Assembly: GCF_000150275.1 (NCBI RefSeq)
Contig: NW_002060944.1
Location: forward strand, 1,784,911 to 1,848,910
Length of the DNA: 64,000 nucleotides
Reading direction: 5' to 3'
Source: Trichoplax adhaerens
Lineage: Eukaryota > Animalia > Placozoa
Shown: positions 3,512 to 55,147 of the stretch, piece by piece
How the letters are laid out: each line of letters opens with the position of its first letter
Numbering within the stretch: the first letter of the stretch is position 1
Notes under the pieces: model-generated
Seen by the model: the letters and a program-made list of their open reading frames with translations, nothing else
The model's database searches: none
Told to the model about the DNA's origin: nothing
Position numbers and translations under genes: made by a program

Positions 3512-3811
3512 TGTACAGTACAGTACATATGTACAGTACATACAGTATGTACCGTAAGTACTGTACAGTACAGTACAGTACAGTACAGTGTACTGTAGTG
3601 GCAAAAGACTAAAAGAACTGTACAGTACAGTACTGTACTGTACAAGTGCACATGGGCCACTACTGTAGAAGTGAGCAGAGACCATACTGTACTGTACTGT
3701 ACTGTACTGTATGGAAAAGAAGAACTGTACTGTACAGTACCGCAGACTTTCCTGTATTGTACTGTACTGTACTGTACTGTACAGTACAATAAGTGTACAG
3801 TGCAGTACAGC
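3512..3811. repeat. GTAC[A/T] (CAGTA/TACTG) pentamer array 1, in the TOMM22/NAA60 divergent gap
   Basis: Runs such as CTGTACAGTACAGTACAGTACAGTACAGTG (~3561-3590) and TACTGTACTGTACTGTACTGTACTGTA (~3685-3711), interrupted by short unique spacers. Confidence 0.95.
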
Positions 3812-4064
3812 ACATCGTTATAACCACCTTCAATTGAAATACAACGTTAAGTCGGTGATACCATACTAAAGTACTAAAAGGAAGAAATTATTAAATCGTA
3901 AATCATAAAAATACTGTTTCCTCTGTCCATGTCCAATCTCCATTTTACTCGCTACGTCTCCATACGTAGATGGACAAATGAGTGCAACTAATTGAATAAG
4001 TGAAAATGCATGGACAATTGTTAAATAGCTATATTTATGTGTTGCGAAAGCATTTATTGATCTG

Positions 4065-7000
4065 ATGGAAGGCTTAAGTTTTCGGTCTCTGCGATCTGAT
4101 GATTTCAATGAGGTTCAACATGTCTGTCGGTTGTTATTCCCTTTAAAGTAAGTTACGTCGTCGTGTATATTATATATAAGTTACCTTTAACATGATATTA
4201 CAGTACCAGTACATAACCGAACCTTTTACTCTGCGGTTATTACCAAAACACTGCTGTGTATCCGTCATCGTTGTTGAATTTTACTGTTATGTATGGCACA
4301 TGTTGCTATTGGTAGTCCCTGTTGCTAGTCTACTACATTATTGGTTTTGTTTGTTTATTGTGTATTTTTGGGTTTTCCTAATGTTCGTTTGCAACATTGC
4401 AAATGCAGTCTTGAAATTACGGTTCTGTACTTCACGCCTTCTACATACTGTACATTAACAGTATTAGCGTTTACTCACTCTATTGTATGCTAGACAAGCG
4501 AGGTGATGCCATGCAGCTAAAAGAAACTTAGAGGTTTAGTATTTCCTTTCAGCCTATATTTTATTCTCGCCGTCTGTACGCGGTATATCTAACTGATTCG
4601 GAGTCGGTTTTGATTATACTTATTCGAATTTTTAGTGCATTGTAATTTCTTATTTGCGGTTAGTAAATAAATGAATGAATAGGCTTATGACAACTTTCTC
4701 GACTTTACTGGCCTACCTAAGTTGTGTTGAACATTTTTTTTGTCTACTCACAGTAATTAGTTAACCCGTATTTGGCAATTTAAGTGCATTTGGCGTTCAG
4801 ATCTACGTACGCGTATAAATGTGTACATTTACTGATGGCTCTAACAGCTATAGTTTGGGTTCATTTACTAACTTAAACACGAAAAATCACACACTTACTA
4901 CTTATTTTTACCGTTTAGCTACTCTGATGAGTGGTATAGGGATATAACGTCATCGAGTAAGTACTACACAAGAGCAGGAATTGACAATTTATCCAGGATA
5001 ATAGCTCTGATAATTGTCGAAATTAAATCCAAAAACGATTGTCAAAGAGAGGTATATAAAACGATATATCCTTTGTGTTCAATGTGCTGTGCAGTACAGC
5101 AGATATTCTACTGTATTTTGCTGCTTACAGACATACAACTAGTCACTAGGGATCATTTTCTACGTGTACATATATAATATAATAATCCTATATTTCTTTA
5201 AAAAATTTTGGTACATTTTTCGCCAGAGTTCTGCCAACTAAATACAGTCATACAGCACTGTATGTAGCATTGGCTCGATACGAGTATGAATAGTGAACAG
5301 TTTCAGAGCTGATCTGGTATCATGTCATTCATTGTATTACGCACGGATACCTGAATGTTGTGATAGGAAAAGAAACTGTTTTATTATTTCGCTTTAACTA
5401 TATTATTATACCATTTAGTTTTTACTAATCGATCTTGCATACCTAGTTATGCTTTATCTAACAATAAATAAATGAATTGTATTATTTATTCTCTCGGTAT
5501 GCAAGCGTTTTAACCATCCGCTTACGCCCTAAAAGCTATTGTTTACAGTGATAAAATATTACGTTGTAGAACTTCGTATGGATTTACTTGCACAGTACTA
5601 CCGTACTATCAAATTAGAAACGTAATGCGACCAAAGAAGATATCGTCCATTGGAGCAGAAATTTTGTATATACAGTATTTTGTGTTAGGGCGATACTGCA
5701 ACAAATTCTGGCTTATAAAGCTCATAAGGATATCAAACGTTTATAAATAGTGCAAAATGTACAATACAAGAAGCAGTTTGTATGAGGCTCAGCTGTATAG
5801 AATATTGCTATCCAGAGTTAATACCAGGAACCGTGTTGAAAGTTCCTACTATTCTCAATTAATAGGACTAATACTGTACGTGTATATATAGTAATACATC
5901 ATATTAGTACACAATCTAACAAATGTAGCCTAATATATAATATCATCTTACTGTAGTATGCTATGTATGCAATGTTAGCGTGAAAAAATTACTAGAGTAT
6001 AAGTGAATTCTGATCAAAATATACGTACACTAGTACTGTACAATACGTAAATCTCATTATACTGCATAAAACGCAGCTAATCCTAGAACGAGGTGTTTCC
6101 ATCAGCAACGTGGCAGGTATTTATCTACTTTCCCTGCTGTGTAATGATAATGCTAAAGTTGACGATTACGGCTGCAAGGTGCTTGCTATCGAAAATTGCT
6201 CGAAATAAGTATGCGATTATTTATGAACTTATGACTTTCTTCGATCTTAATACGCTTGCAGGACTATGGATTACTTTATGACGATTTATCCGATCAAAAC
6301 GTCGAATTAGCTTATGTACTAAGTTTAGGAGTAATTCCTGATTATCGCCGTTGTGGTATTGGTAAGTTAAACGGTTAAATCTTATAAATGCGTTACAATA
6401 CGAAGCTATACTTCCTATTTTTAGGTGTAGCAAGTACATGGATTTAATAAAAAAATTTTGATATCTCGCTTCTCATCGATTATGTGATTTTAGTTGTCCA
6501 ATTGAATGGATAGTTTCTAGTAATTAATATTCACTAATAACTTTGCAGATAGTAATTTAAATGTTGGCGAGTTAGCATTGATGTAAGGAAGACCCGTTAG
6601 GGTAACGGGCGTTTTATAACCTCATATTACTAAGTGCAGGTTAATTTACAGTTGAATTTATTGATATCATTTAATGATGTTCTATTCTGAATTCATATCA
6701 TGTTTACTTCAGCATCATTTCTTCTAACGAGCCTCATCAGATTTTTAAAGCAAGAGAGACTAGACTGCAAAGCGGTTTACCTTCACGTTTTGACATCAAA
6801 TATCCCAGCTATAAACTTCTATGAATATCACAAGTTTCAATTATTCAAATATTTACCACAATACTACTTAATTAGTAATCAATCCGCAGATGGGTACTGT
6901 TACGTCTGTTATATCAATGGTGGTAAAGGACCAATATTTATAAGAATTACATATCCTTTTAGGCATTTATTGATTAATGCTATAACGGTTCACTTACAGA

Positions 7001-7290
7001 TGTCTGGTGTGATAGTTAAATTAACAAATTACTAAAACAATGGACAATTTCTGTTTCTACGCATAGTTAAGACTGTAATAAATAACGTAATGTAAATGTA
7101 TGAATATGTAGTAAATCGATTATTTTCCATAACATTCCTTAAAAACTTTCTTAAAGGTGTGTACGATATTATAAAGACATTGCAGCCGCTATGCCTAACC
7201 CGATTAAGGAAATCCATTCGAAATATGTGCGAATTGATTACTAATATGTTTAAAAATACATCCAAAGACAGATTTGTTTTCAAAGTCTAA
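4065..7290 (+). CDS. NAA60: N-alpha-acetyltransferase 60 (NatF), GNAT family; exons 4065-4147, 4919-5051, 6262-6361, 6713-6950, ~7134-7290
   Basis: Spliced product MEGLSFRSLRSDDFNEVQHVCRLLFPLN|YSDEWYRDITSS...|...AYVLSLGVIPDYRRCGI|ASFLL...CKAVYLHVLTSNIPAINFYE...YLPQYY...DGYCYVCYINGG matches NAA60 motifs. The last intron appears to be AT-AC, and its 3' boundary is less certain. Confidence 0.92.
6951..7133 (+). other. Putative U12-type (minor spliceosome) AT-AC intron of NAA60
   Basis: ATATCCTTTT begins at 6951, a few codons after the conserved YINGG. An AC at 7132-7133 restores the frame into the terminal ORF ending at 7290. TTTTCCATAAC and TTCCTTAA branch-like words lie at 7123-7142. Confidence 0.7.
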
Positions 7291-11596: not shown

Positions 11597-11644
11597 AAAG
11601 TTTCTAGTAACGTTAATTCATGATTTCGTTTTTACAGGACGGAC

Positions 11645-11920
11645 ACTGTACAGTGTACAGTGTACAGTACTTACCTACTGTACAGTACACACTTATTATT
11701 ATTATTTATTATTATTATTAACTAATTACAGTACTGTATGCAGTACTGTAATTGCCGGTGTCATAGAAAATTCCCCAAAATTTAGAAAATTTACTGTACT
11801 ATACAGTACAGTGTACTGTACAGTACAGTGCAGCAGTAGTGTACAGTACTAGTGTACAGTACTGTACAGTACTGTACTAGTGTACTGTACTGTACTGCAC
11901 TACCGTACAGTACCACTGTA
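11645..11920. repeat. GTAC[A/T] pentamer array 2, in the REXO5/MAD1L1 divergent gap
   Basis: Examples: ACTGTACAGTGTACAGTGTACAGTAC (~11645-11670) and GTGTACAGTACTGTACAGTACTGTACTAGTGTACTGTACTGTACTGCAC (~11852-11900). Confidence 0.95.
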
Positions 11921-12112
11921 GAAAATACTGCATTAGTTCTCGTAGTTGTCAGTAAACACGACAGGTAGTGTTTCAAAGTGCTGTCTTGCTAAAAGTGAGG
12001 TCTCCCTCTATTCCGTTAAAATATGCTCGTACTTCGTCCTGAAACTTAGAATTTATATTTATCATAATAATAAAATCACTCATATATATGTAATTAGGTA
12101 ATAACAACGAAG

Positions 12113-15100
12113 ATGAATTTTTCTCGTACACCTCAAGATAGCACGGCTGTTATCCGATTTGTGGAAGGCTTCGACGGGTTTTTGAACAGTGAAGGAAAGT
12201 CTCCAATTTCGCAGCCTTCTCAACACTTACCAACAGTAGTTAGTGATGATAGCATGTGCAGTGGCAACACTGATATTTCGTCTCACATATTGGATAGTAA
12301 ATTTAATAATTCCTCTGTGAATGATATCAAAGTTAAGAGGTCAATAGGTAAGTCCAAATGTTCAGTAAATTCTCTTTCTGCTGTGAAAGGTTATAATTAT
12401 TATTGTTTACACTGTTCGTTTACGACTTCGTTTATACGTAATAATGCAAGCAAGATATTGACACAGGTATAAGTATACGTCTTGTAATTATGGCTCTTTC
12501 ATCGCATACGTGTCACTATTCTATTATATAGATACGTTGTGCTACCTCTGAAATTAAAGTAAATAAAATAACAGCGCTTTTACTCGTCAGATATGACCTA
12601 AAAATTAGATGTACAGTACGATTTGGATATACGCGTATACCGTTATTAGAGTAATAAAGAATGATTTTATATTATTAAATCTAATTCAGTCTTTCAGCTA
12701 CATACGCGTACATATTAAAATTCACAGTATAATAACCGTACGGTACTTTTACGCAAAATAGCACGAACAAGACATTTTCCTAGTAAATTATAAATAAAGT
12801 AGTGAAAGTAAAGTAGAGTTTAGGGCTTCGTCCGTTAAAAAATATACGCGTACTGTACGTAGACTACTGAAGTAAATTATTAAAAGTAGAACACAGTACG
12901 GTACTAATGCAAACTGAAATATTCTACTCTGCAAACAAGTACTGTATGCAAAGTATCATGAGCATGGGTTCAACTTGTAATAATACACAACAACCGCGAT
13001 GAAAATCCCCAAGAGGTTTCTCATCTGTTGAGATACACATGCATGTCTGTAACGTATATCACATACTTAAGTATGTATTACATGCATATACTTTACGCTG
13101 TCACTTGAATATTTCATACTGATTAATTTGATCAGAATTATAATGGCTTCGACGCAAAACTGAGATGGAAATTCCGAAACTCCCAAATCCGTTCCTTCCA
13201 TGTACTGTAATTATGACTTATCAATGAAATCTGACCTACTGTGTATTCTTTTTCAGATTTTGATAAATCAATCGAGATTTATCAACATAAATCGAAAATT
13301 GCTCGTTTGGAAAATCGTGTTGAGACTCTTGATGTGGAAGTCAAACGAGCCCGTATTGATACAAATGAAGAAATCAATGCAAGTCGTGCTGAGTTTTTAA
13401 ATCAACGTGAAAGTAAAGATGAACTTATGAGGTATAATATATGCTGTGTCAAATAAATATAAGAGTACATTACATAGCATCTACTAGATAGGGTTGGTTA
13501 GACTACGGCCAGTTTGAAGGTAATTATTTTTAGTTTGTATTGATTAAAGGAAGCCATCAGACGAAATTCTATATGTAGATTAGCAACGAGAATAATGGAA
13601 TTAATTAGCAATTATGACAGTGTTCCCTATATCTAAAAGTTTTGCATTCTATGCTGTACTTAGTTGTAAAAGTTAGAACTCTATCTGGAGCGCATAGTAA
13701 GTATTCGAACTGGAATAGTGCGTCTATCATATACAATATTTATTTATAAGGAATTGGGTTTCCATGACGTACTACTGTGTACTATTTATAATAAGCATCA
13801 GTTTTCCAACTCGTAGTATGCAACTGGAATGTATCTGCATTTCGAAACTCTTTCTTCATCCTTCAACTGTACTTTAAGCGCTAATTTTTCATGTAGGTTC
13901 TGCGGAACGAAGTGAAATTTGAGAACTTTCAATCAAAATACAGTATATTACAGCTTATAAATTTATTACCATGTATCGCATGTATAGATGATTTTGGACT
14001 ACAGTAGAAGAGATATTTAAACGTGAATTGCCTTAAAATTTCACTTTTACCTTCTAGTAACAGGCTGTTACCGCATATAACGCAAATAGTGCTATGAATG
14101 CTTCCTTCTGTGATATATAATATGGTCCATTTATATATTTAGGCGTTTAAAGCTTGTAGCTGAGCGTGAAAAATCCAATCATGAACAATTAAATGAATAT
14201 CGTATCAAAGTCGATCAAATGAAATCCAACTCAGAAAAGAAAATTGAGCAATTCATTGACGACAAAATTAAAGCCTCCGAGCAATTTGCAGAAGTACAGC
14301 TATAATTTGATAGAAATGCATTTACGAAATTGCAGTTTTAATACATGAGTTGCTTTAAATTATGTTCGAAATGATCTGAGGATACTTTATAGAAGTATCA
14401 ATGCAAATTACTTCGTATTATTGTTAACAGTAGGGTTCCATTGCTATGAGTTTAATTTAATTCCATCGGATGACACACTGAATCTATCTTATGTACTCTC
14501 CATTTTGTTAAATTATGTCGTATCTCTCTCTCTTATGAGTATAGTTACATGATGATAGTACGTACAGTATTGCGTTAGATCTAGGAGTTAATGGGCAACA
14601 GTTACGATTATAATCCTTGAACATTAACTCTTTAATAAGCTGTGATTTGCACCTCGTACAATATAGGAAGTGGCCAAATTACGGTCTGAAGCCAACATCG
14701 TTAAGGAAAAACTGCAAAAGTATGTGGCTATACGAAATTGATAGTTTGATATAATTTTCAATATACGAAATAAGAGCTGTAACTGTAAACTAATTGCAGG
14801 AGTGATTCAGAGATTGTGAAACTACAACATCTTTTAAAAGAGTCAGAATCAAGATTAAACCAACACGAGAAGTAAGCGATAGTAATGATACTGTAGTATA
14901 CTGTACTAAGCTGCTGTGATTCCGATACATGGTTAACCCAGTTATTTTGCAATTACTCCTATGTACCGGTATTCAGTTTACTTGAAAAATACAAGGAACA
15001 AGGCAAAGAATTGGATTGCTATAAGATGAAGGCCACCAAAGCAGATTTGAGGATTTCAGTAAGTAATAATGATTACGATCAAAAACGACTTGAACGTAAC

Positions 15101-18100
15101 ATACGCGCATTGCAATAGTACTGCAGTTCTAGTGCCGCGACGTTGAGCCTTTACGTATTAGGTGCCATATTTCACATTACTTCCATACCGTACTAGGCTG
15201 CAATTGAAACTGCAATAAATATAAGCTTTTTTAAAACGTTAAAACGAAATGTATTGGGCTAAATGTCCTATTTGTAATCAATATTTGACTGCACTATTTT
15301 TTATAACTTTAGGTACTTGAAATTGAAAACGACAAGTTAAGAACAGAGAAATCATTATCTAATACATCTGAAACTTTCTTAGGCAAAATAAAGGAACTTG
15401 AAGAGAGCTGTATGATATTGCGCGAAGAAAATCGACGCCTTATGTAAATTAAAAAACGATCGTAATTTACGAAAACGATCGATAGTAAATCGATTTTACG
15501 AATTGCGTTACTACTAATGAATCTATGATATTTTAATTGTCTGACAGTCAGAATAAGAGAAACAGTATGCTGCAAACGGAAGAAATTGAAAATCTTAAAA
15601 ACAAATTAGCAAGGATTGAACCACTTCGATTGGAGAATGCTGAATTAAAATCTCGTATTGAAGTATTACCTGAGCATTTTCATATTTCACATCGCTGATA
15701 TCTTGAATTATACGCGTACTTGCTAGTACATGTTTAATAAATGTGTTTATAGAAAATATAAATACATTTTTTCTTATTTGCAATATTTTGTCAAAACCTG
15801 CGTTTCTCTATTTTTGTCAGGAATACATGGCTGCGTTTAGTAAATGGAAAGCCATCGACGAGAACAGTAAACCAATGTAAGCGTAAACAAATTAATAACC
15901 ATTATGGTCAAGCTATGTACTAGCTTATTTATTATTACAGAATTTCGTATCTACATGTACATTTTTCTTTCATAAGATCCCCTGATTGTCTTATTGGAAC
16001 TGTAAGCGATCTACGGCGTAAAAATTCTTTGTTGCTGGAATCGAACGGAGAACTCAATAGCAAGTCTGTTATTATCTCATTGACTGATTAAGACACTTAA
16101 AGCCGTAAATCTAAATATAGTCTATCTACAGGGCTAGTCAGCAAAATACTGCATACGAAGCGTTAGTTACTAAATTAGCTACTGCTCAAAAGGACTTACT
16201 TGCTTTCAAGGTATTGCGCAAAATTTTAAAATATGTCTACATTCAAGCTCTTAAGTCTTGTTAAACAGTGCTAAAATCTTTAGGAAAAGGTTGAACTACA
16301 AGCTGAGTCCATAAAGCGATTAGAGAAAAGACTGTTATTCGTGACGAAAGTATGCAGAATTTATTAGGGCAATATAACTTCCTTAAAATATATTAAATAT
16401 AATACCCTGATACTTGAAGTCAATTTTTTGTACCATTAAGGAAAGAGATGGTATAAGGAATGTGCTGAATAGCTTTAATGCGGATGATATCTGCGACCAA
16501 GCTGCTTCTCAACTACTCAAGGTTGGTTGATCTTAAATGTTCATTTCAAGTGTAATTTGATAATAGACTATCCAGCTACCTGAACTAATATTACCATACA
16601 GACAGAAAAAGACTTAGAAGCTTGCTATAAGCGTATCGAACAGTTGGAGGTATGTTCGATGCTGCCACATTAAATAGTTCAATACATAGTAATATTAATT
16701 ATTGAAATGCATCAATTTGAAGAATACGATACTTTCGAGGTATTGGTGTGCTTAACACGGTCATTGCGTAATGATTTCATGAATACCCTTTACTACAGGC
16801 AGAAGTTGAAAGTCAGAGGACTTTAAGAAGAATTGATAACAGAGATCTTAAAGAGGTACTGTTCTTGTTCCTAATCTTAGCTTCGGAAATACACAAATCT
16901 TATTTCGGTAATTATAATTTTAGAGAACAGTTCATCTGGAGACGAAGTCTCCAAGTAATACTAGTAGTACCGAGTACGATGCTTTGCGTGAGCCTTGGCG
17001 AAGTATTAGGTGAGCAAAGTTCATCGAATTGTAAGATAGTTTCATAATAATGTAATGTTATCTCAAACATTTACAAGCAGGGAGCGGCTAGCAATCTTGG
17101 AAAGGGAAAAGGTCGAGTGGTTAGAAGAAAAAGAAAGCTATGAAGGAATAAAAGAAAAGAAGCACTTGCAGGTATATTCACAGCTACATAGTATAATTTA
17201 GAATTAGGTTAAATTATTAACCATGTTAGTGACTATTGTTATTTGTACTTGACTGTCTCAATAATTATGAAATTATAGGGCTACTATGATCCATTAACAA
17301 CCAAAATTATACACTTCCGCAACAACCCTGCTTTTTTAGCTGCTGAAAATCGAAAACTGGTATTACAACAGCTACGACGCGAATGTGACCGTTTGAAAGA
17401 AATCATTCTGGGGTCTGAATCTTCGAACCCTTCTAACTTAAAAATTTTACAGAAAGAGATACGAGGTATATATTGATATAGTTTTTTTGGCTTTAAAAAT
17501 CCTTGACGGAATACACGTTTAATTTGAGCGAAATCTTCTCAATTACAACTTAACTGGAAAATTCTTATATGGTCGTATGTGTACGTTAGAGTTACGTGAA
17601 CAACTAGCTAATGCAGAAAAATTTAATCAGCGCTTAAAAGAGGTTGGTGCATAACTCCTTATAAACTATTACTGTATTCTACGAGCTAAAACTTCTACCA
17701 TGTTTTAGAGAATATAATTCGTAATAACCCGCATTTTTCATTATTACATACCTTAGATAGTTAGAGAAAAGATAAAAGTATTTCGTGAAGCGTGCTATAT
17801 CTTGACTGGCTATAGAATTGATGATATAGGCGAAAATAGATACAAATTACAATCTATTTATGCGGAACATCCTGGCGATTACCTCATTTTTAGTGTACGA
17901 TGTTATTCTTCTTGACGTTTTTATTATTCAATTTTTAAAAAGTTGCGGACTATTGTCTAATGATTTCTCATGCCTTATCGTCTATAGATTGCAACTGGAG
18001 GGAAAGTTAATCTGCTAGAAACAGATTTTTTGAATACTATCGCTGACTTGCTAGACAAATATGTTTCTGCCTATAACGCTATTCCAGCACTATTAAGTGC

Positions 18101-30991: not shown

Positions 30992-34957
<3,966 letters not shown>

Positions 34958-35457
34958 CTTTTTTTCCCCCTACTGTTAGAGCAAAATGCATAGACTGAAT
35001 TAGTTTGTGACTATTAATAAGTTAGGCATTTACTATTTATAAATGGAAGATAATCACGATTGTATTAACCGTAAGATACCTTTCGGCTATAATCAGTACC
35101 AATATGTACTTATCCCTAACGCACGTCTCTTTGATCACTTTTCAGCACCGTGAACGTTTAATTCAGTAGTAAGATATAAAAAGCACTATAACTACAATTC
35201 AACATTAAAAGTTCAGTACAAGTGTACAGTAGTCGTGAAATAGTGTTTAAGCCAATAATTACGGCGCTTTCTGAATGCTGCTTGTACTTCGATGATCAAC
35301 CTTGCCGAGATAACGATACTTCGATACTAAGAGAAATTTACCAAAGTTAGGATATTGAAATAAGTTTACAAAACAATGATCTCGTAGTTAAAGATAATAA
35401 TAATAATAATAAAAATAAAGATTGCCAAGTTTCTAATGCAAAATATCGACGTCACTC

Positions 35458-35743: not shown

Positions 35744-35779
35744 ACTGTAAATTAAAATACTCCTGAAACAGTCCTAGTG

Positions 35780-36388
35780 CACAGTACCTTACACCTGTAC
35801 GGTACTGTACAGTACTGTACAGTTAGTGTTATGAATATCTTTTACATTTTACTGTAAAAGACTATACAGTAGTACTGTACAGTATATCACAAAAGTCTAC
35901 AGTATAGTACTGTACTGTACAGTACAGTACAGTACAGTACTGTACTGTACAGTACGTGTGTCAATCTGATACTGTACAGTATCAGTGTACTGTACTGCAC
36001 TCTACAGTATTAACTTACTGTATTTTAAGTTCTCACGAGCGAGTGCTACAGTACGGTACTGTACAGTGTACAGTACACTAATCACTATTATTGCAAAAAA
36101 GTACGGTGTACAGTACCGTACAGTGTACTAGTAGTACAGTACTGTACATGCGTCGAGAAAAATTTCTTTCCGTTATGTCGATCATTTAATACTGTACAGT
36201 ACAGTACAGTAGTCCCTGTTTCATACAGTACAGTATGACACAGTATACTGTGCAGTAACAAAAATTGCTTTCTGTTCATCTCGATCATTTAATACTGTAC
36301 TGTACTGTACACTACTGTAGTCCCTGTTTCATACAGTATGACACAGTATACTGTACGGTGTACTTTACAGTACTGCACATACCGTACT
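35780..36388. repeat. GTAC[A/T] pentamer array 4, in the FOXJ1/MRTF divergent gap (contains a ~100-bp tandem duplication)
   Basis: Example: AGTACTGTACTGTACAGTACAGTACAGTACAGTACTGTACTGTACAGTAC (35906-35955). Smaller patches occur at ~36655-36670 and ~36855-36970. Confidence 0.95.
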
Positions 36389-39600: not shown

Positions 39601-41872
39601 ATTATATGTGTATTTATGTAAATATATTCATTTTTATTAGCCGGTAGGATTGATCCAACGTTACAAGCTAACAGTAAAAAATTAAAAAGGTTACAAATAG
39701 TCAATGAACTGAAAAGCTTCATCAGAAACCGACCAACACCTGATAAACTTATCGAGGACAATATCTTACAACCTGAATTTTTAAACAACTTGCATATCAA
39801 TTCATGCCCTGACTCCCAATCAAACAAATTACAGAACATTGGACGTGACGAAAATTTCGATACCTCAGAATCTTTTCGATCATCACCATTTTCCGACTTT
39901 TCTGAAATCGAACAAAATCCTGTTAACAATCCTCACGATAGACTGATTGTAACTCCAGATGTGCCATATCCAGAATCAGATTTAAATGAGAATAGTAATA
40001 CACAGTTGTCTACAGGTCCATCTGAACATGGCTGTGTTGGTATTGATAGATCTGTGATGTCTAATTTAAGAAACCAAATTTCGACTATCAATGTAGGAAA
40101 TATCCCCTCCTCTAATTCACAGTATGTTGGTATTGGTGAATCTCCTCCATCTCAGCAATCCTTAAGCATATCCTCCTTTGATAGCACTTATTCTACAATG
40201 GATCATCGTCACCATAATGACAGTAACGTTATTTTGTGCCAACGGCCAAGATCATTTTCTAATCGCGATGATCTTTCTAATCCTATAATCACCTCTAACG
40301 CTAATTATTACGTAAGACACTCCCCAAATAACGCTGAAACTGTAACTTTATCGAATCAGTCAATACATAATCCATCTAAGGCTACTAATGTAACTCTTGA
40401 CAGTATCAATCAATTTTCTGAATTTTCTCAATGCCACACTAACGCTCATGTCAACAACAGATCCAATACATTAGTCTCTAGAGCCTCGTCAGGTGATCTA
40501 CATACGCGTAAAATAACTCACACTCAAGAAAATGGCCAGATGAATCACACGTCTCGATCAAGAGGCAAAAAAGGCCAAAAGAAAAATCAGAAAGAGTTAA
40601 AATATCACTTTGCGCAAGGTACACTAATTAAAGATCATCAAGCAAAAATTATATTTACAAATGAAAAGCCAAAGTTAAAAAAGGCACAATCTTGCTCTAG
40701 TATTAAGACACAAGCGCCAGTTGAAATCTCACTTCAATCTTCAGCAATTTTATCTCCTAATTGGCATAACAATGTTACTCAAAGAATTGCAGAACTAAAA
40801 ACGTCTGTAGGAGTAGCTGGTAATTCTCTTTCATAAATATAAAATATCTATTTTCCGCAAGATTGTATTATTTTGCTACCACTATTTTAACCTCATTAAT
40901 GATTACGACAGATGGAACAGATATCAATTTATTGCAAGTTGCAAAGCAAAGCCATAATCAACACGGTAAGAGATTCCTATTTTTATTTTTTGCGCTTGCG
41001 AAATGTATTATACATTCAGCTTAGTTGCATTAGTATGGAAATAAGACAGCCTTTGCTTCCAACTAGGAAATTCATCCAAGCTTCATGAAATAATTAATAC
41101 CTCAGCTGGTGATAATTCACAACCATCGCCTTTAGATCGATCCGAGGTGTTACCTTTATTTTTCAAGAATACATTGTCTGATAACTATCTGAATCAATTA
41201 CATCGAGATACAATTGTGCAGCCAAATCTTGAGGGTAATACTCATATTAATAACGGTACTTAGAATCGTCCCCCCCCCCCCGTAGTTCTATATCATAAGT
41301 GCACCTTGCTTTATATTTGCGGAAATACTACCGTATTCACTTTACTTCGGAATTAATCACGCATATTAAATTATAGTTATAACCTAAACGATTCATGTTG
41401 CTTTGATTGCATTTAGGAAGTTTCAATTACAATGAAAATGTACCTAAAGACGTAATTGCTGCTCGGGAGTTTCACTCAAATCAGGATTCAATTCAAGTTG
41501 ACTTTAATGCAGAAAATAATCAGTGTTCTACAACGAATGCAGCATCTTTTACTTTATCTAATGACGAAATTTATGATAATGAGGTAATTCACCTATCGTA
41601 TATATAAATAAAAGTTAACCGGTTATTAATATAGTAAGAAGATTTCATAGTATGCAATAACTTAGAATGGATAAACTTTTACCTCTCAACCAGGCGGAAT
41701 TTGATTTAGAAACTATAACCGACGGCATAAGCTGCGACTTTCAAAGAGGTAACGATAAGAGTTATACATATTCGATGTATTTCATCTTTCTGAAGTTATC
41801 TTATCTCGCTTATCTATTTTGTTAGAGTCTTATAGAGACGATTTGCACGAACTGATGCATGAATTAAACTGA
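36676..41872 (+). CDS. Myocardin-related transcription factor (MRTF/MKL family): three RPEL motifs, basic box, degenerate SAP
   Basis: Exons 38876-38941 DLDQRLRDRQPHNNLVEHGIIP (RPEL1), 39156-39211 PRGTSGSVFVAARKLQLMK, 39341-39416 TKDTLNRRISNRPQKKDLMQRNILE (RPEL2), and 39641+ SGRIDPTLQANSKKLKRLQIVNELKSFIRNRPTPDKLIEDNILQP (RPEL3). Basic box KKGQKKNQKELKYHF at 40567-40611. First exon 36676-36808 and the acidic terminal exons are inferred from splice phase. Confidence 0.85.
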
Positions 41873-43937: not shown

Positions 43938-46900
43938 TCAAGCTATGGCTTGATTTCCGTTTATCTCATCCACGCTATCTGTACCGTCAGGACCTAATGA
44001 TCATAATTATTATTAGAAGTACGTAGATAAAATATTAGAATTACACTAGTAAAAACGTTCACTATTTCTAAAGACATAAGCAATACAAATTTATAAATTA
44101 ATACACCTACCTTTAATTAAAGGTTCTTCATCTTCAGCATTTATTACAGTGGTCATACGTATGCTTTGCTTAGTTTTGTAGGTCAAATAGGTAATAAAAA
44201 ATAACCCAGAGCTGAGCAGATAGAGCCCTGGAAATAGTAGTATCAGAGCCGTCCTCAAACTTGTGCTTGTAGCAATAGGGGGAATCAGTAAGGGCATTAG
44301 TCCACCTACACAAAACATATCTGTACATTAGTGCCTACACGAGTTGAAACGAGATCATACGGACAAAAGAATATCATTCTTTTACTATTTTATGCCAAAA
44401 GAAAACTCATTCTTAATTTTATGCTACTCTTTACATTATTATTCGGAGAAATGACTAAAAACTACTTACCAATATTAGTAATGATGAAAAGGTAAATGGC
44501 TACTGCTACCGTACGAATATTACTTGGCACCACCTCAACTATAACTGCTAGGGTAACGCCAATCCACATTTCACCAATAATATTACTAGGTATAAGGGCA
44601 ATAAAAGCCCAGGGAGGCGGTAAAAGTAGAGTTAAGAGAGCGAATGGTGAAGCTACAGCCTAAAACACAAAAGTGAGAAGGCTGTCATCGAATTCTTGAC
44701 AAACAAAAATTTATCACCTCGAGATACATTATATCAATTGAAGATTTGTTTGACGTTATCCATTAAAGCTACCTGGCTCATAATTAGAACCCACAGACGT
44801 GCGCTAAGTCCCCGAGAACCGACCAACCGATCAGAAATGAATCCACCAAAAAATGCTCCTGCAGAACCACCAATTAAAGGAATCCAAGTTAGAAAGTCTG
44901 CGACTACAACACGCGGGTAGTACTTGTTGAAATATGGCTTCGTATTGTATGCCCATACATATCCCCCAGCATTTCTAACTGAGCCAGCAAGGATGAGCAT
45001 CAGCAGCGTTCGATCTGCGAACGGTTGTAATGCTACAAACAAATAACCGCATGTATAAGTATTAACGCAATATCTGAAATCTGGTAAGAGATATTCTACT
45101 CCACTTAAACTTAAATAAAACATTAATACACGCCTAGTCTCAGCCTTTCCCACGTAAATCTTGGGCTGTCGCTAATTTCGTTTCGCCTAGCCGGCTCTTT
45201 GACGGTAAATATAAGCAATAAGAATATCAAAACACCAGGGATAGAGGCCAGCCAGTAAACCCATCTCCATCCTTGATTTATGATATTTGCTCTAACAACA
45301 AAATCGCCCAATGCATATGATATACCGTAGCCAGTATAAATCCCCCAGTTATAAATACCAATGGCAGAAGCACGTAAATTCTATTGAGTTAATTGAAAAC
45401 AGGAGTTGTTACAAATTAATATACCTGTATACACTGCATGCGTATTTAATACGGTAAAAAAGAATTCACTAGTCACATATAATATTATAAGGTTCAGTTA
45501 TTACGACTTAATAGTTCCGCCTTACAGATTAATACAAACTACAGTATACTCCCTTACCACAGGAAAATAATCGGCAATTAGGCTTGTAGCGAATGGTGTA
45601 CAGCCTGCTTCACTATAGGATCATGACAAGATCAAAATGTAAGTATAATAATACTTCCAACATAGAAAGAATATCATCTTACTTACCCGATTCCTACACC
45701 GAATCTTAATAAAAGAAGTTGCCAATAATGTTTCGAAAATCCTGTTAGGAAGGTCATCACACTCCAAAAAAGTAAACAAATCGCCAATAGGTTTCGCCGG
45801 CTAGTTACATCAGCCGCAATTCCAAGAGGAATTCCAGAAATAGTGTAAATTACTTTGAAACAAGAGATAGCGTCTCATCATTATTTCAATAATCTTTATA
45901 ACTCAAAATTAGCTACAACTAGATAAAACTTTAAATTGTAACAGACTTAATAAAGTAGCCATCTACTTCCTCTGCTTAAGAATTTTTAGTCATTGAAGAA
46001 CTAAAATCTTCAAGTCACTACAGCGGTAAATTGTCCTACTGTATATTACATCCTGTGTCATCACCGTAACGGTTTCTAAGTATCTCGATAGGTAACGCTA
46101 TAAATTGATTTTATCACTAATCTACTTGCATAACCTTTACTGTAATTGCACGATGCGATAGCTGCTATATCTTTGTATTATACTAGCGCAGTGTTCAAGC
46201 GTATGCAATGAAAATGTATTATGCCTAGTTTCTGGGTAATGATGACAACGGGCTTAAACAAGGGATCAAGTCCATGATTTTAGTGTATTTTTCATTAGCA
46301 GACTAAATGTGAATCATTAATCTGCTTAATTTTACCTTGAGCTTGGCTATCTGTAACTTCGTTTGATGCGCTTGATATACTTGCTACTTTACTACAGCGT
46401 TTTACAACAAGTACAGTATACTATCGATCTCACATTATTGCAGTACACAGTAATATTTCATTTATGTATATTATATTATTAAGATAAGGAAGTCATAGAT
46501 CTATCTAATACGGTTTAATCACTCGTTTGTCACCGTTTCGTTCTGATATTGAAATGTGTAACTGTATAGCCGATTCCTTGCGATGGAGTCAAACTTTACA
46601 TAATCGACATAGTACATTTTATCTAGCGACTAAATTGGTGCCGTGCAGTGCCATAAATTTGATAATGTAATATGCCAATCCGAAATAACTGCAGGGCTAA
46701 CTAGTGTGTTGCAGTTAGCGTTAATTACAGTAAATTCTTGTGCATTACCTATAAAAACTGGTCCAGCTAGGAGTTGATACAATTCTCCTTGTCCGTTAAA
46801 GTCGTATTTGCAAACGCGGTAACCACTAGGGGAGATAATTTCATGACATCTACTCGGAATCGATTCCCGATCCATAGATGTTTCATCATATTTCATTATT

Positions 46901-47248
46901 CATAACAAATATCATATTTTTAACATTAATTTAAATCTTCTTGTATTATATGATTATAAATACTGTATAAACCGCAAGTAACTAACAGTCAAGAGAAACT
47001 TACATCGCTTCTGCTTCTGCAACAGGGAGCGTTCTGTTAATTGTACACGACGTGTTTCCAACTTCTGCGATACTATACGACATATTCAATAAGCAGTCTT
47101 TATCTCCCCAATGCATATCCTGTGCAATATACATTGACGTTACACCGATCGCATAGCGATCTAATTGATTAAGAAGGTACGTCAAAAGGAGCACGACCAA
47201 AACATACACTGGATACCATCCAATACCGCGTAGTAAAGATATCGACAT
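43938..47248 (-). CDS. Major facilitator superfamily transporter, Spinster-like (multi-exon)
   Basis: TM1 YVLVVLLLTYLLNQLDRYAIGV, GIPLGIAADVTSRRNLL, GWRWVYWLASIPG...VKEPAR, GGFISDRL. The last exon (43993-43938, GPDGTDSVDEINGNQAIA*) joins in phase after EDEEPLIK. Confidence 0.88.
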
Positions 47249-47499
47249 TTTATTTCTTTTTCATTAAAGTGTTCCAATGATATACTGTATAATTTTTATT
47301 TTTAAACGGTTTACTGACTTTACTTTATACCTTGTATCAAAACGTACGGTTAAAAGCTAATTGATTCAGTGATCATTAAAAACGTAATCCAGTTAGAAGC
47401 TGACCTTAAATGAGGATCAGCTTTAATAAAAATTCACCCGATAAAGTGTTTTCCTGAACCTTTTTATCACTAAAAATGTAAAATAAATAAATTACATTA

Positions 47500-47972
47500 C
47501 CGTACTGTACTGTACAAGACAATGAAATTTTCATATCGGAGTACAGTACAGTACAGTACTGTACTGTACAGTACTTAGTCCGCTGCTGGATTTGAAGCAC
47601 ATACAGTACTGTACAGTACTGTAACTAATGAAGTTTTTTATTGAATCATTTCGCGTACTGTACTGTACAGTACATACTGTAGAGTTAAGGAAGATACTCC
47701 AAAAACTAATGGCGTAAAGTACAGTGTACAGTACAGTACTGTACAGTACTTTTCCATCTAAAAATCCGAAAGAATTAGTAAATACTACAGTACAGTACTG
47801 TACAGTACTGCAAACAGTGCACAGTATACGGTACAGCACAGTACTGTACTGTACAGTACATTATAACTACAGTATGAATACTGTACTGTACTGTACTGTA
47901 CAGTACTGTATGCCTTAACTATTCTTGAGTAGATAGTTGAATACTGTACTGTACTGTACTGTACAGTATACA
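47500..47972. repeat. GTAC[A/T] pentamer array 5, upstream of the MFS gene and of the small + strand gene
   Basis: Example: GTACAGTACAGTACAGTACTGTACTGTACAGTAC (47541-47574). Satellite patches at ~48256-48280, ~48430-48452 and ~48610-48631. Confidence 0.95.
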
Positions 47973-49537
47973 AAAAATTCAGCCCGCTAGCTCACATGTT
48001 GGTGTAAATACGGTATTTTTGCATTAGTTTAAGTCCTAGTTTTTCCTTTTTCTTTATCTAAAGAGAAAATAAACATGCTGAGCATGTACAGTATAACAGT
48101 ATATTAAAAAAAGATATTTCTAAAGAGACGGAAGTCCTTGCTAAAAAGGTGCTACCGTTTACTGAGCCCACTAAATACCAATGAACTCGACATAAAGTTC
48201 TACTCAAGAAATACCAATCAGTGTCATGATCATTGTTGGTGCAGAAATATCACTCACAGTACGGTACAGTACTGTACTGTAATTCTAGGAATCACCTTCC
48301 ATTTGCACCTGCTAGCTCGTAACAATGCTCACCATGACAATAATTGAATGTTTTATTTATTTATTCATTGACAAACTACGTAAATGTGACCAATCCCATT
48401 GTTAATCCTAAATTCGGATATTGCCATCACTGCACAGTACTGCACAGTGTACATACACAATTGTGCACATAGTGTATTTTTAAAAGAGCATATCATTATA
48501 AAACAGGCTTGTCCAGCATTTATTACAGGAGACTATAATTCATTCAATCAAATTGTTAATATGCTGTAATTGTGTAGAATAGTATGATCGATAAAATATT
48601 GTAAATTAAGTACGGTACCATATAGTACAGTATATGGCAAACAAAGACAAAGAAATTTATACCAAGGCATGAACGTAAACGTAGACGAAGCATCGTGTAA
48701 CTCGACAATTTTTTTACCCTCTTAGGCCCTCTCTATATACTTTGAACAAAGTTACCGTATCCGTTTCATATTCCACTTATTCATGAGATTCGAATATATG
48801 ATCTATTAATATACCGTAGGCCATGCAGTATCCTGTTAATATGCAACGCTTATAAAATATGGCATTTGATCTATACTGGAGTAACGTCACGGCATGTACG
48901 AAATCCGTGCCGCCTTTACCTAATAAACTGGACCCTTGACTCTCTGGTTAACTAAAATTATACACGTCTATGTTATTAAAATTCGTTCTACAGAGGTACA
49001 GTACTATAGTGTAATGATAATAACTGCCTATTTAATTGTATATACGCGTATGAGGGCTGATATTAATTAATAGATGCTTTATCCTTACATTCAAATGAGG
49101 CATGTAACTTCTAATACAGAAATTTTCTTACTTTAGGATTAAACTTCTAAAGACAATCAACTAGAATATGATAAAAGCAGTAACATTGGAATCAATCCTA
49201 GCTGAGGCTTTAACTAAAAGTCTACTTATAGTTATCCGACGTGAAATGGATCTGGCTATAAATTAAAATTACAAACCACAGTTTTACTTAAAACGCTTAC
49301 CGCAAAAACGTGACTTTCGGTTAAATAGTATCCACCAATAATTAATTGCATCACTGCATTGTTTATTAAAACAGTATCAGTGCTTAAGATATAGTTTCAA
49401 AACTAAAGCAATTTACAATGATATAAACTCGTCATCAATCTGACACAGATTTTACATTCTAGGCTGTTATAGTAATATTTTCAGTATTTCATAAATTTTA
49501 TGCAATATCATACAAGTATCTTTCCTGTATTTCTGAA

Positions 49538-50272
49538 ATGGTATTGGATACAACAGCAGCAATAGCTGCGGTGATTATTTTATACGCTATGCTTATCTCC
49601 GATGTTCTTATTGATGGTCTGAGAATATTATCAACGAAATCATTGAATTCTAGCCGTAAAAGAAGGATTTACACAAGGTCAATTCCAAGCAGGCGCTAAT
49701 ATTATTACCTAAAGTGGAGATACAAGCCTAAATTTAGATATTTTTAATTAATTTTTATCGCCGAATTCACTCTATCAAAGAATTTAGATGGATTTGCACA
49801 GTAGCATATGACATCAGTACACTAAGTAATACAGTATGATGTTGTCTCTTTCTCATTCCTGAATCAACCTTCATATATGCATGTACAACTTAGGTATTCA
49901 TAAAGTCAACGACATCACTCCATAAAAACTCGATAATCTTAGATTCTAAAATATCTCCAATTTAAGATAGCATTTGACTCTTCTAAAGTAATTAATCCTA
50001 GATGATGTCGATCAGTGACGTTATCAAAACTGGCAATTTCTAAGTTGCATGATGACATAATCTCGTAAAATTTGCTATGATATTAACGAATTATTTCGCT
50101 TTTTCCTATTCTTAGGCGTTTTAAGAGGCGGCCGGTAATAATTATGCAACCAAAACCGAAATCCGAATCTTTATTAGCTAAACTATGCGGCAGAAAGTGC
50201 TATCAGCATGAATCGATGAGGCAAAGATCATCCAACAAAAGGCATTATGTTAGATTCGGCACGGCCGTTTAA
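49538..50272 (+). CDS. Putative small secreted protein / peptide precursor, 98 aa, exons 49538-49677 and 50116-50272 (absent from the ORF track)
   Basis: Donor AAG|GTCAAT and a strong acceptor TTTCGCTTTTTCCTATTCTTAG|G join in phase 2 to give MVLDTTAAIAAVIILYAMLISDVLIDGLRILSTKSLNSSRKRRIYTRRFKRRPVIIMQPKPKSESLLAKLCGRKCYQHESMRQRSSNKRHYVRFGTAV*: a hydrophobic N-terminus plus several multibasic sites. No homology recognised. Confidence 0.5.
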
Positions 50273-50518
50273 AAGTACTTAAAATGTGTTCGAATAATTG
50301 CGCAAAATATTGACGTAATAACGATAACATAAACAAATTTTTAAACAAGCATAGTACATAAAATTTGTATAGAATCACGATTTTTATCAATTTTATAAAA
50401 ATTTTATAAGATCTAATTAGTTGAAAAATGGGCTGCGATGGTGATCTACTCTTATGGATATATACGTACCAATTATAATATCCTTAGATCTTCATCAACC
50501 TGGACTGCTCAGGAATAA

Positions 50519-53500
50519 TTAATTTTTTTCACCGTCAAGTAGTGCTTGGATCTGTGAGAGTAAAGGTGTTGATACTTATCATTGAATATCTTACGTGAAA
50601 TCAAGGTTTTCCATCTCGGTCTCACTACAAAATGTACAGTTATATGCTAACAAAAAGGAAGAAATTACGAAAAGCCAAACTTTCATTTCATAAAACTGTA
50701 TTAATAGCATCCATAACCGTAATTTGCTGTTCAATGTCCTGTGTCATCATGTTTGTATCTTGTTCGAAGTATTACACTTTTGTATGTAATGAATTTCTAT
50801 TTATGTTTATGTTGTAGTTCATGTTATAATACGAATGCAATATCGTTAACTTTATACAGCGCTTTCGTTAATATAACCAATATAGGAGTAGGTTATAATG
50901 TTAATCAACAATAAAGGAAAGTGCAAATGAACTACGTAAGTCATTAAATTTAAAGATTAAGTCTTATAATCCCTAGGCAGCTTCTTTACCTTTTTTAAAG
51001 TATTCGATTGAAAAAGCAGTAATTGCTTTTCTAATTTTAAATATTCTTTCCTCAAACTTTTCTGTCTTTCAATCAAATCTGTCATGATACCAACATCATT
51101 CTATAGGTATAAATCATATGGTAATATAAACTTAATTCATTATTACCTAAATTGACCAGAAAGCAAATGCAAGATATATATTTTTATTTACTAACTGTAT
51201 CTATGCTAGTCATTACAAATTAAAAACTGCTTTTACAGGACATACTTTTATTCTTTCTACTTCAGGAGAAGTTACATCTTCGTCGTCACTTCCTATACCA
51301 ATCATATATCTACGACGATTAAAATAATGACAGAGCCATAAAATAAGCAGTAAAAGATATTCGGGCAGTTTTTAACTTCATGTAATAGTAATAACAAAAC
51401 CGAGAAATACCTTTCAAACTCTTCTGTTGTCATTGATAATTGATCAGCTTGCAGGTTATCAATAAAAGCTACAGCACAACACTAATAATGAAAACAATCG
51501 TAAATAAGGACCTTAATTTCAATATGGGAAAGTTAACTTACTAAGTTTGTAAAGTAATAACCCGCTTCGCCTGAATTAAGTCTAAGTGCGTTCGTAAATC
51601 GCATGATATATCTAAATCGTAAAGACATGGAGTTTAATTCAGCTATCATAAAAATTAGCAATTAGGCCAGCTAAGATGCGTACTGAATATCAGATTGAAG
51701 ATTTATCGGGTTTGCTTTGATTAAAACGTAAATTAACGCAGGTAGAAATACATCAGCATTAACAGACGTTGCAGAGCATACTTGAAGCATAGCTTTGAAT
51801 TAGTTAAGGAAAAATATCACATCAACCGAATTATCGAAATTTCGTAAAATGCAGCAAGAAACACAAATCGTAGGATACAAATCACCGTACGACAACATTT
51901 AGTGTTGCATGATAGCTTATCCTCAGGCGCCAAACTTGAATGCATTCTAGATATTTCTGTAGAAAAAATTTATATTTATTTATTTATATTTGATTAATTG
52001 AATTAACACGATTTATTAAACGAAAATCATTGAACCTTGTATTGCTTTGCTTAGTAGAGTCGCTACTTCCACGTTATCAAGAGTGACCTCTAACTCGAGG
52101 TGCCTCAAAGTTATCCATTGGAAACTTTCTATTCGTTCTTTGATTAAATCATTTTTTATTTGATCTTCGGAGTCTTTCTGGTTATACAAACTAAGAAAAT
52201 AGGAGTCACAATAAATTCTCGTGACGGCATACGGCAAAAGATTTTCAACAAATGCTTAGGGAACTCTTACTATTTATAAAGAGAAACTGTCAAAAATTTC
52301 TCGATCTTGTCCATCATTAGAGATGTATCACGTAGTCCTTCGAATCGTTCCAAAAGTTTCTATAAACATTCTTCAGAGTTAGACATAACTTACTTTCTAA
52401 GATTATTTTAACTGTATCCACCTCCGCTAACGCTAAGGAAGAATACGAAATTATTACAATACTGTATAGGGCTAAGAAAATTAGTAACCTGATAAAATGA
52501 TTGTATTAATTCACTTTTTTGTTCTATTCCTAAGCTGTCTTCCTTTATCTTGGTACTTGTACTTGAAGAATGATTTTAAAGTTTTAAGGTATGCTTTCAT
52601 TCGAATTTTAATTTAATATTTCGATGATAAACATAATATTTACACTGTATATTGCTGGAAAACCTCGGTGAATACAGAAGAATCACAAATGTTACTTCGC
52701 AAGAATTCTTGCAAACGGCGACTTGCAGCAATAGCTTCCGCTGGAAAAATATTAGCAGCACATTAAAAAATTTTGTTCACGGAATACTACGACAGATTAA
52801 ATAAATGCACAGGGTAGTATAACAACTCAATATAGCTAAGATTAAAACATGGGATAATTTTTCATGCCACTGATGATAAAATATCAAAATACTTTTGTAA
52901 TAATAATGAATTCGATTTTACCTACTAATACGGACTAATACTTTCTAAATGAGTAGCATCAAAAGAACACGCAATTACTCTATTACATGATCTAAATTTC
53001 TGCGAAACTTGTTTCAACCATTCGCATACTAGATACCTCCGTAGCGTAACCTACTAAACATTAATTTATAAATATTTTAATATTAGAACTTACTAGCAAC
53101 AGAATTATTATGTTCCGGAGTGTTCTTCTTCACAGCTTTCGAGGTCGTCATGCTATAAAATCCGTCATATCAATCTCCACAGATATTTGATATTGATTAC
53201 ATTTATACTATATACAAGGTATTATTGCAAAGTGCGCTATAATAAACGAACGAATTGATCCAATTCATTCTTCAACTCTGTTGATACTATACTTAATTTA
53301 AATTTCCAAAATTACATTAATATTTTAGGTCTAGTACAGTACGAGCTTAATAATGATAATAAATGCTGAAAGATCATATAATGAGCTAGTTTAATAACCT
53401 TCGCTTTCCATCCAAAGATAATCCAGATGCCTTTTCTAACTTATTAATTAGGCTAAAGCTCCTGTTCTTATTAGGTATCGTTTCGGCTTAATTTGTCATG

Positions 53501-54821
53501 CAACAAATATTGTCAAAGTTAGACTCAGAATTATCGGAATATGTTTCTGATTTTTTAGTCTGAAATAACCTACAATTTATCATGATTTACAGTTAATTAA
53601 AAGCTTGCAAACAAACTACACTATAATTTTACGGTCACTTTTATATTACATTGTATAGGCAATAGCAATTAAACATCTTGCCCTAAAAATACCACTATTC
53701 ATATCTCACTGAATGTAATGTATTGTAAACTGCTGTAAATTACCCTCGCAAATGTCATACGAAAACTATCCCGAACTAAAGAACAGATATAACATGGCAA
53801 AGTTTACGCCTAAGTACACGCATACCCATTACCTTTAATACTGTTATTTATATGATTCGATTCATCTTTCTTATTAGTTATCGGATATTTGGTATCGGGT
53901 AAAGATTTAGCTTTTTGGATCTTGTAACATTGTGAACAATAACCATCCCAAGAAGGATTACCATAGTAGCTACATCTAGTGGCATGTGCACGTAACAGCT
54001 TCCCATCAATATCAAGATATTATAGGCATTGAGTTTACACAAATAAGATAGATATATGTGCAGCATAAGAAATAGCAATTAAGCAGATGCCAAAAACTGC
54101 GCAATATTTTAATCCGTATCTGAGAAATATTCTGCCATCTGCGTTTATCGAGTTCAAGTATTAGTTCAGAAATATGGTAACGAAAATCGGGTATTAGTAC
54201 TATATTTTCTTACAATTGAATTTAAAACGAGCGTTACATTTACGCTAACTTAGTTTACTGTTAAATATCGAATGCTTAGAGTTATGATACAAATACGCAC
54301 TGTATCCACGTTGAGAAGGTTACATATTATCATTAGAACTATCAATTTCTTCCAATCTATAACAGTAGCTTAACAGATAGCTTTAACGCTAGCTGTGCGA
54401 GATCAGCCAACACAACATCAAAATTAACATCTACAGTACGTAAAACTATTTTTCTGCATACTGTAATGGCTTTAATTTTCTTACAACTAAGATATTTGTC
54501 CTACTAGCAGTAAAATTATTGGACTACCTCGGTGCCTCGATTCTAATCACTGATATATTTCTGAATTATATAATGCTACCTTTCATATTAGTATAGTATT
54601 TAAAATGCTGTACGAACAAATGAAGACTTGCTAAATCAAAATACTGTACAGCTTCATTAATATACGTAAGTCACCGTATTTCAACAGATAAAAGTTTACC
54701 CATTTTTGCATTTAACGCTAAAATAGTTCCAGCTTCGTCTGTTTAATTTCTTAGCCGAATTGTCTTGGCTAATCTTTGAAGATCTTAAGCTCGACGTATT
54801 GCTCTCTGACTCAGAAGCCAT
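50519..54821 (-). CDS. RABGEF1: Rab5 GDP/GTP exchange factor Rabex-5 (A20 zinc finger + VPS9 domain)
   Basis: A20 ZnF KCKNG|CSYYGNPSWDGYCSQCYK; VPS9 region IESFQWITLRHL, APEDKLSC, NADVFLPALIYVLIKANPINLQSDIQ|YIMRF...GEAGYYFTNL|CCAVAFIDNL; C-terminal coiled coil. The last exon (50551-50519) is inferred. Confidence 0.92.
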
Positions 54822-54825
54822 TTTT

Positions 54826-55147
54826 CTACTGTACTGTACAGTAGCTTTGACTGCACCCTAAAAATGTTAAAACACTGTACAGTACAGTACACTCAGTGTA
54901 CAGTACAGTATACTGTATACGCAAGTACAGTACTGTATTGTACTGTACAATACAGCAAAGTACTGTACACTGTATGTACAGTACCACGGGAGATCTACTG
55001 CACTGTACTGTACAGTACAGTACAGTACAGTACACAGTATACAGTACATACAGTACTGTACAGTACAGTACGGTGATGTTGCTCCATAGACTACCAGAAT
55101 ATTCTAAAATCTCAATCACACACTGTACTGTACTGTACAGTGTACAA
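54826..55147. repeat. GTAC[A/T] pentamer array 6, filling most of the RABGEF1/CCDC57 divergent gap
   Basis: Example: CTGTACTGTACAGTACAGTACAGTACAGTAC (55003-55033). The array begins 5 bp from the RABGEF1 ATG. Confidence 0.95.

Follow-up and report, generated by a model that had tools for sequence, protein, structure and literature searches.

Strand-mosaic clusters of the (ACAGT)n pentamer at divergent promoters in a 64-kb window of the Trichoplax adhaerens genome

Pentanucleotides dominate the microsatellites of the placozoan Trichoplax adhaerens, and in the passages of Wang et al. (2010; Biology Direct 5:18, PMC2871265) that deal with them ACAGT accounts for 78%. Of the copies, 54% were placed no more than 1 kb upstream of a gene and 85% no more than 5 kb; translation genes and kinase genes were enriched for them, and a role as a transcription-factor binding site was suggested. 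We analysed a 64,000-nucleotide stretch of the T. adhaerens genome (NCBI RefSeq assembly GCF_000150275.1, contig NW_002060944.1, positions 1,784,911 to 1,848,910 of the forward strand; hereafter the window), in which six large arrays of the pentamer GTAC[A/T] lie in gaps between divergent genes. These arrays are the promoter-proximal (ACAGT)n repeat of T. adhaerens, already published. The genome, the unit and the place upstream of genes are the same, GTACA being a rotation of ACAGT and GTACT its reverse-complement form, and the arrays agree with the repeat as described in those passages in their perfect-run unit (>12 bp), their genome-wide over-representation and their position within about 1 kb upstream. 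A first-pass annotation of the window had proposed an undescribed promoter-identity system; that part of its claim falls, because both the repeat and its upstream position were published in 2010 (PMC2871265). The same passages treat (ACAGT)n as a simple microsatellite of perfect repeats, and within them there is no account of clustering in multiple blocks over 250–510 bp, of an A/T mosaic or of a preference for head-to-head genes. What we add is modest, a contrast in strand mosaicism and a possible mis-annotation of the arrays as Mutator elements, and does not amount to a new kind of element.

Kim et al. (2025; Nature 642:1097, PMC12221973) described hubs formed by the promoters of about 3,000 housekeeping-type Trichoplax genes, with a motif in common. 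Their group GP1 consists of loop-forming promoters in open chromatin, and its motif is common to four placozoan species; Mutator annotations, from a transposon annotation by EDTA, are enriched at GP1 promoters, and inverted repeats contain the loop-anchor motif (PMC12221973). Like the arrays in the window, the GP1 motif is a repeated promoter motif associated with inverted-repeat structures. It has been attributed to Mutator inverted repeats, however, whereas the window arrays show no transposon hallmarks. The first-pass annotation had cautioned that transposon-derived promoter motifs might already have been discussed for placozoans, and this caveat was apt. In the Chimaera preprint (bioRxiv 10.1101/2024.11.14.623548), a network trained on Trichoplax Micro-C data recovered repeated ACAGT de novo. 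The pentamer is the one found here, and the link, a computational one made by in-silico insertion, is to insulation or fountain patterns of the contact maps; the preprint offers neither locus-level anatomy nor an experiment. Low-complexity promoter sequences thought to prevent nucleosomes include GAGA elements (GAGA factor and CLAMP in Drosophila), vertebrate CpG islands and yeast poly(dA:dT). GAGA elements are also thought to tether promoters, and CpG islands depend on DNA methylation. Any likeness of the arrays to these sequences lies in similar working by analogy only, as sequence and lineage are unrelated.

Array anatomy and position

The window contains 262 copies of the decamer GTACWGTACW (W being A or T), where 100 dinucleotide-preserving shuffles average 0.58 and never exceed 5; consecutive GTAC cores are spaced exactly 5 bp apart in 149 cases. 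Clustering of these hits yields six large arrays, 250–510 bp long, with 12–30 tandem junctions and 23–41 GTAC cores per array; outside them the window holds only small patches of 1–4 junctions each. The large arrays are:

3513–3788: array 1, 31 GTAC cores in six blocks, between Tom22 (minus strand) and a GNAT/NAA60-like gene (plus strand)
11662–11914: array 2, 23 GTAC cores, between a minus-strand gene and a MAD1-like gene (plus strand)
25114–25532: array 3, 30 GTAC cores, between Exo70 (minus strand) and WBP11 (plus strand)
35802–36311: array 4, the largest, 39 GTAC cores, between a forkhead gene (minus strand) and an MRTF/MAL-like gene (plus strand)
47502–47965: array 5, 41 GTAC cores, upstream of an MFS transporter gene (minus strand)
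54831–55139: array 6, 29 GTAC cores, between a Rabex-5/RABGEF1-like gene (minus strand) and a coiled-coil gene (plus strand)

All six had been reported at these places in the first-pass annotation, with limits that differ from ours by a few bases to about 80 bp; its wider limits take in degenerate units, which Tandem Repeats Finder picks up too. At the array sites this program detects repeats with periods of 5, 7, 10, 15, 23 and 103 bp.

Every one of the six head-to-head gaps in the window contains a large array, compared with none of the six tail-to-tail gaps (one-sided hypergeometric 1/924), which bears out the earlier statement that tail-to-tail gaps lack them. The clusters lie in the shared gap of divergent pairs, about 100–400 bp upstream of start codons (845 bp for the forkhead gene). 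Start codons were inferred from open reading frames, and that of Tom22 alone was compared with a database protein. The Tom22 reading begins MVSFIS at 3400–3417 on the minus strand (ATG 3415–3417, separated from array 1 by 96 bp) and is the N-terminus of the database protein TRIADDRAFT_53049, to which the Tom22 exon is 98% identical. At the other promoters, the distance from ATG to array is 113 bp for the coiled-coil gene and array 6 (open reading frame 55222–55872, plus strand), 199 bp for the MAD1-like gene and array 2 (12098–12469, plus strand), 254 bp for the MFS gene and array 5 (47003–47260, minus strand), 296 bp for WBP11 and array 3 (ATG at 25828, MGRRSTS), about 400 bp for the GNAT-like gene and array 1, and the 845 bp already given for the forkhead gene and array 4.

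Each cluster is made up of five to ten short blocks, with a palindromic GTAC core every 5 bp within a block and unique spacers between blocks. The perfect pentamer register covers about half of the array bases; the remainder is spacer, with a median length of 23 bp and a GC content of 37.6%. The 200 kb upstream of the window contain 14 further large arrays, and the joined 264 kb hold 81 perfect runs of 3–10 GTAC cores. Across the 20 arrays of this joined stretch, the 5-bp phase is random wherever a spacer exceeds 30 bp, so the short blocks of an array are clustered yet independent of one another. The same loss of phase excludes a single decayed long microsatellite as the sole origin. When the 20 arrays, each with 300-bp flanks, were compared by blastn with the pentamers masked, no sequence common to arrays was found; the first-pass annotation was thus right that spacers are not shared and that the arrays are not copies of one inserted element. 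A search of the spacers for enriched k-mers returned weak signals only (for example GCCCA, 6.8-fold from 8 matches) and no convincing motif common to the spacers or core promoter element.

Within array 4, a 103-bp unit comprising spacer and pentamer blocks is repeated in tandem 1.9 times at 84% identity (36158–36354), and a flank array near 95,150 of the joined 264-kb stretch carries a 55-bp duplication at 89% identity; because such duplications lie inside arrays, arrays also grow by segmental duplication. Besides 5 bp, the spacing met most often within arrays is 7 bp (29 cases in the 20 arrays), and a heptamer variant, (ACAGTAC)n or (ACAGTGT)n, with GTAC cores 7 bp apart occurs at 11643–11668, 25282–25296 and 55027–55048. 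We also considered a polarity of GTACA-type and GTACT-type units towards the gene on their own side: array 1 seemed to fit, the other five did not, and the idea was dropped.

Genome-wide abundance and the strand mosaic

A scan of the genome for GTAC[AT] triples, proposed in the first-pass annotation, covered 105.6 Mb on 1,414 contigs, with the pattern read backwards as control. The triple unit GTACWGTACWGTAC was found 16,635 times compared with 7 for the reversed pattern, four-unit runs 6,121 times compared with 0, and runs of five GTAC cores 2,688 times compared with 0. For the 200-kb flank, gene strands were mapped from codon-scored open reading frames, a heuristic too coarse for firm counts, which at its threshold missed the Exo70 block in the window. 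On this map of the joined 264 kb, about 14 of the 20 large arrays sit at minus-to-plus transitions and none at a clear plus-to-minus transition. Some 195 kb upstream of the window (contig about 1589713–1590715) lies an exceptionally long, 1-kb array with 80 GTAC cores and 48 tandem junctions.

At its fifth position the unit has A or T, with a switch from one to the other at 37% of junctions. Adjacent fifth bases are alike in 104 of 164 pairs, compared with 82 expected if the letters were independent. Because GTAC is palindromic and A and T replace each other freely at the fifth base, both strands of an array read alike. C or G stands at the fifth position in 4.1% of units, and an in-phase core with a one-base change was seen in 23 of 206 triples, about 2.8% per site, the changes being mostly G>A and C>T.

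This mosaic sets the Trichoplax arrays apart from tracts of the same repeat elsewhere. Single-orientation runs make up 735 of the 2,688 five-GTAC runs genome-wide (27%), compared with 93% of sites in a control set of 120 metagenome contigs from other sources, picked by the same pattern (Fisher p about 1e-221); the first site of a contig was single-orientation in 105 of the 120. Ordinary (ACAGT)n tracts keep their strand, whereas the Trichoplax arrays flip, unlike ordinary microsatellite behaviour. The contrast favours something particular to the Trichoplax genome, of whatever nature. A minority of these contigs, among them L104, L106, L110 and L114, have A/T-mosaic GTACW runs resembling those of Trichoplax, and 11 of the 120 lack any single-orientation site; in L114 the letter pattern TAAATTAA recurs. 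These mosaic contigs could come from other placozoans or represent an independent case.

The A/T strand mosaic makes the arrays strongly self-complementary. Array 1 contains two perfectly complementary 30-nt arms, 3558–3587 and 3758–3787, 170 bp apart, and folds of the single-stranded DNA reach z = -8.2 for array 1 and z = -7.6 for array 6.

What the arrays may do and how they may arise

The position of the arrays, their strand symmetry, their block structure and their tolerance of A and T only at the fifth base can be read directly from the DNA. We hypothesize, with a probability of roughly 0.45, that the arrays are clustered, overlapping palindromic WGTACW sites bound by a putative dimeric or multimerising DNA-binding factor. 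With such a factor in place, the promoter region shared by the two genes would stay open in both directions; the factor would also contribute to the insulation and promoter–promoter contacts of Trichoplax Micro-C maps. Blocks would arise and be replenished through slippage and local duplication, which would supply the material, and selection would retain them at promoters. In favour of this proposal we count the presence of arrays in all six head-to-head gaps and in no tail-to-tail gap, the site-like constraint on core and fifth base together with the low share of single-orientation runs and, from the literature, the recovery of repeated ACAGT from Micro-C data and the GP1 promoter hubs of Kim et al. 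The first-pass annotation had offered an open-chromatin mark, a platform for a multimerising protein and a loop anchor as candidate roles.

Several observations weigh against this proposal. The GTAC core decays at 2.8% per site, close to the 4.1% for a change of the fifth base to C or G, and thus shows no clear sign of stronger protection than that base. On the coarse map, genes of the same strand stand on both sides of some flank arrays (for example those at 94,935 and 193,385 of the joined stretch), and some apparent divergent transitions have no array. Because they are also found at one-directional promoters and are missing from some apparent divergent gaps, the arrays mark divergent promoters neither strictly nor exclusively; they are a frequent promoter feature, and the earlier claim that every divergent promoter is so marked does not extend from the window to the 200 kb upstream of it. 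The Chimaera preprint (10.1101/2024.11.14.623548) describes the transposon-linked motif of Kim et al. as ‘ACGG’-like and lists ACAGT separately. Tandem (ACGG)n can be discarded as a separate co-located motif, with no occurrence in 264 kb and 3 matches to (ACGG)3 in the genome, where it is thus nearly absent; the pentamer variant GTAC[C/G] occurs 210 times in the genome compared with 2 in the control, so ‘ACGG’ might be a variant of the GTAC pentamer family. Finally, the period-7, -10, -15 and 103-bp variants are signs of active slippage and duplication, and the A/T flips could equally be explained by strand-switching replication at a self-complementary repeat. Selection on WGTACW and strand switching both predict A-to-T and T-to-A flips with a conserved core, so the sequence does not separate them.

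A rival explanation, which we regard as possible but tentative, is that the arrays are a mutational by-product: open, transcribed promoter DNA would be prone to slippage and hairpin strand switching, and the arrays would persist without function. The range of periods (5, 7, 10, 15, 23 and 103 bp) and the local duplications within arrays are what it leads one to expect, as are the strong self-complementarity (fold z = -8.2 and -7.6) and the 30-nt perfect inverted arms. Strand switching would explain why only changes between A and T are common at the fifth base, and core and fifth base decay at similarly low rates, through changes that are mostly of the G>A and C>T kinds expected in an AT-rich genome. 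The metagenome (ACAGT)n tracts are 93% single-orientation, however, so the repeat does not flip strands by nature, and the extreme abundance of the arrays (16,635 compared with 7), together with their avoidance of tail-to-tail gaps and introns, calls for a strong promoter-specific process. A growth mechanism of this kind is, moreover, compatible with function. A role for the DNA itself, through nucleosome exclusion or positioning, easy melting, or cruciforms under negative supercoiling that open the promoter without a dedicated factor, strikes us as improbable. Here the analogy is with the poly(dA:dT) tracts in yeast promoters. The unit has two flexible pyrimidine–purine steps (TA and CA/TG) per 5 bp, the hairpin potential is strong, an array spans about one to three nucleosomes, and strand equivalence suits divergent promoters; but a purely physical role leaves unexplained both the avoidance of C and G at the fifth position and the preference for short blocks with unique spacers over one long tract.

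A transposon origin, with Mutator-type or other DNA transposons that preferred promoters as insertion sites leaving the arrays behind as terminal inverted repeats or remnants, is, in our judgement, very unlikely. The case for it consists of the Mutator annotations enriched at GP1 promoters, with the motif within inverted repeats (Kim et al. 2025, PMC12221973), and of the richness of the arrays in inverted repeats. Against it, the spacers and flanks of the 20 arrays share no sequence, and the 13 best inverted-repeat pairs show no target-site duplications save repeat-on-repeat matches. The MULE transposase family PF10551 has only four matches in the 105.6 Mb, at four loci without GTACW tandems in their 1–3-kb flanks, in line with the six MuDR fragments listed in the relevant passages of Wang et al. 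(2010; PMC2871265). The arrays therefore lack what would place them among MULEs, namely shared terminal inverted repeats or internal sequence, target-site duplications of 9–11 bp and an associated transposase source. The formal combination of a 9-bp direct repeat and a 12-bp perfect inverted repeat, 50–1000 bp apart, occurs nine times in the window, always inside arrays; the rest of the window yields none, nor do shuffled sequences. EDTA relies on structural features when it calls such elements. Because all nine formal candidates fall inside arrays, the Mutator label is possibly a structural artefact: structure-based transposon callers may mislabel the arrays, and the looping-promoter ‘Mutator’ calls of Kim et al. 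may plausibly be the arrays themselves.

Placozoans count as some of the simplest animals, with a genome folded into thousands of promoter–promoter contacts, and no other sequence feature of the promoters involved is as conspicuous as the arrays. A bolder form of the binding-site proposal, which we hold to be doubtful, is that strand-mosaic arrays rather than transposon ends would be the true sequence basis of placozoan promoter hubs, the ‘Mutator’ inverted repeats at about 3,000 looping promoters being structure-based mis-calls and the arrays a lineage-specific, selection-maintained platform of overlapping palindromic WGTACW sites for a putative architectural protein that defines bidirectional housekeeping promoters. 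If the arrays are the loop-anchor element, mixed A/T (GTACW)n would give a concrete bait for the architectural protein, and the idea that a transposon seeded the hubs would be corrected.

Gene map and minor features

Gene orientation was taken from Pfam or PDB matches, exon by exon, with exons not joined:

169–504, plus strand: class II aminoacyl-tRNA synthetase, exon match
2500–2781, minus strand: Tom22, Pfam Tom22 (E 3e-13)
6691–7032, plus strand: GNAT acetyltransferase, exon match
17279–17473, plus strand: MAD, Pfam MAD
18889–19119, minus strand: Exo70, match to Exo70_C
26734–26889, plus strand: Wbp11, Pfam Wbp11
34463–34969 and 31768–32091, minus strand: Forkhead, domain match split over two exons
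39622–40833, plus strand: RPEL/MAL (MRTF-like), E 6.5e-4
45126–45380, minus strand: MFS_1, domain match
53813–54019 (zf-A20) and 51671–51790 (VPS9), minus strand: Rabex-5 architecture, domain matches
55222–59482, plus strand: long coiled-coil open reading frames

Most of the flanking genes named in the first-pass annotation were recovered (Tom22, MAD, Exo70, Wbp11, Forkhead, RPEL/MAL, MFS, and zf-A20 with VPS9), while REXO5 and CCDC57 were not confirmed by Pfam or PDB matches. Where it had named NAA60, a plus-strand GNAT match supports an acetyltransferase; the identity as NAA60 itself was not confirmed. A small secreted gene had been placed to the right of array 5, and no convincing plus-strand gene was found in 47966–51500.

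The window holds roughly 13 recognisable genes in six successive head-to-head pairs, and over about 60 kb no junction is clearly head-to-tail. So strict an alternation of orientation is unusually regular and points to bidirectional promoter pairs as the unit by which this region is organised. Beyond the coiled-coil gene, the plus-strand open reading frames 61079–61294, 61990–62454 and 62805–62990 have no family match; if they form a separate gene rather than a continuation of the coiled-coil gene, its promoter has no array. A 77-aa Tom22 fragment that is 79% identical to the Trichoplax protein was found in the Logan assembly, on contigs up to 6.1 kb, and is probably from another placozoan lineage.

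Three smaller repeat features complete the map:

11693–11720: (TTA)9 microsatellite between pentamer blocks of array 2
26467–26658: small patch with 3 tandem junctions, in WBP11 intron 1
63398–63500: small array close to the end of the window, with 4 junctions and 8 GTAC cores

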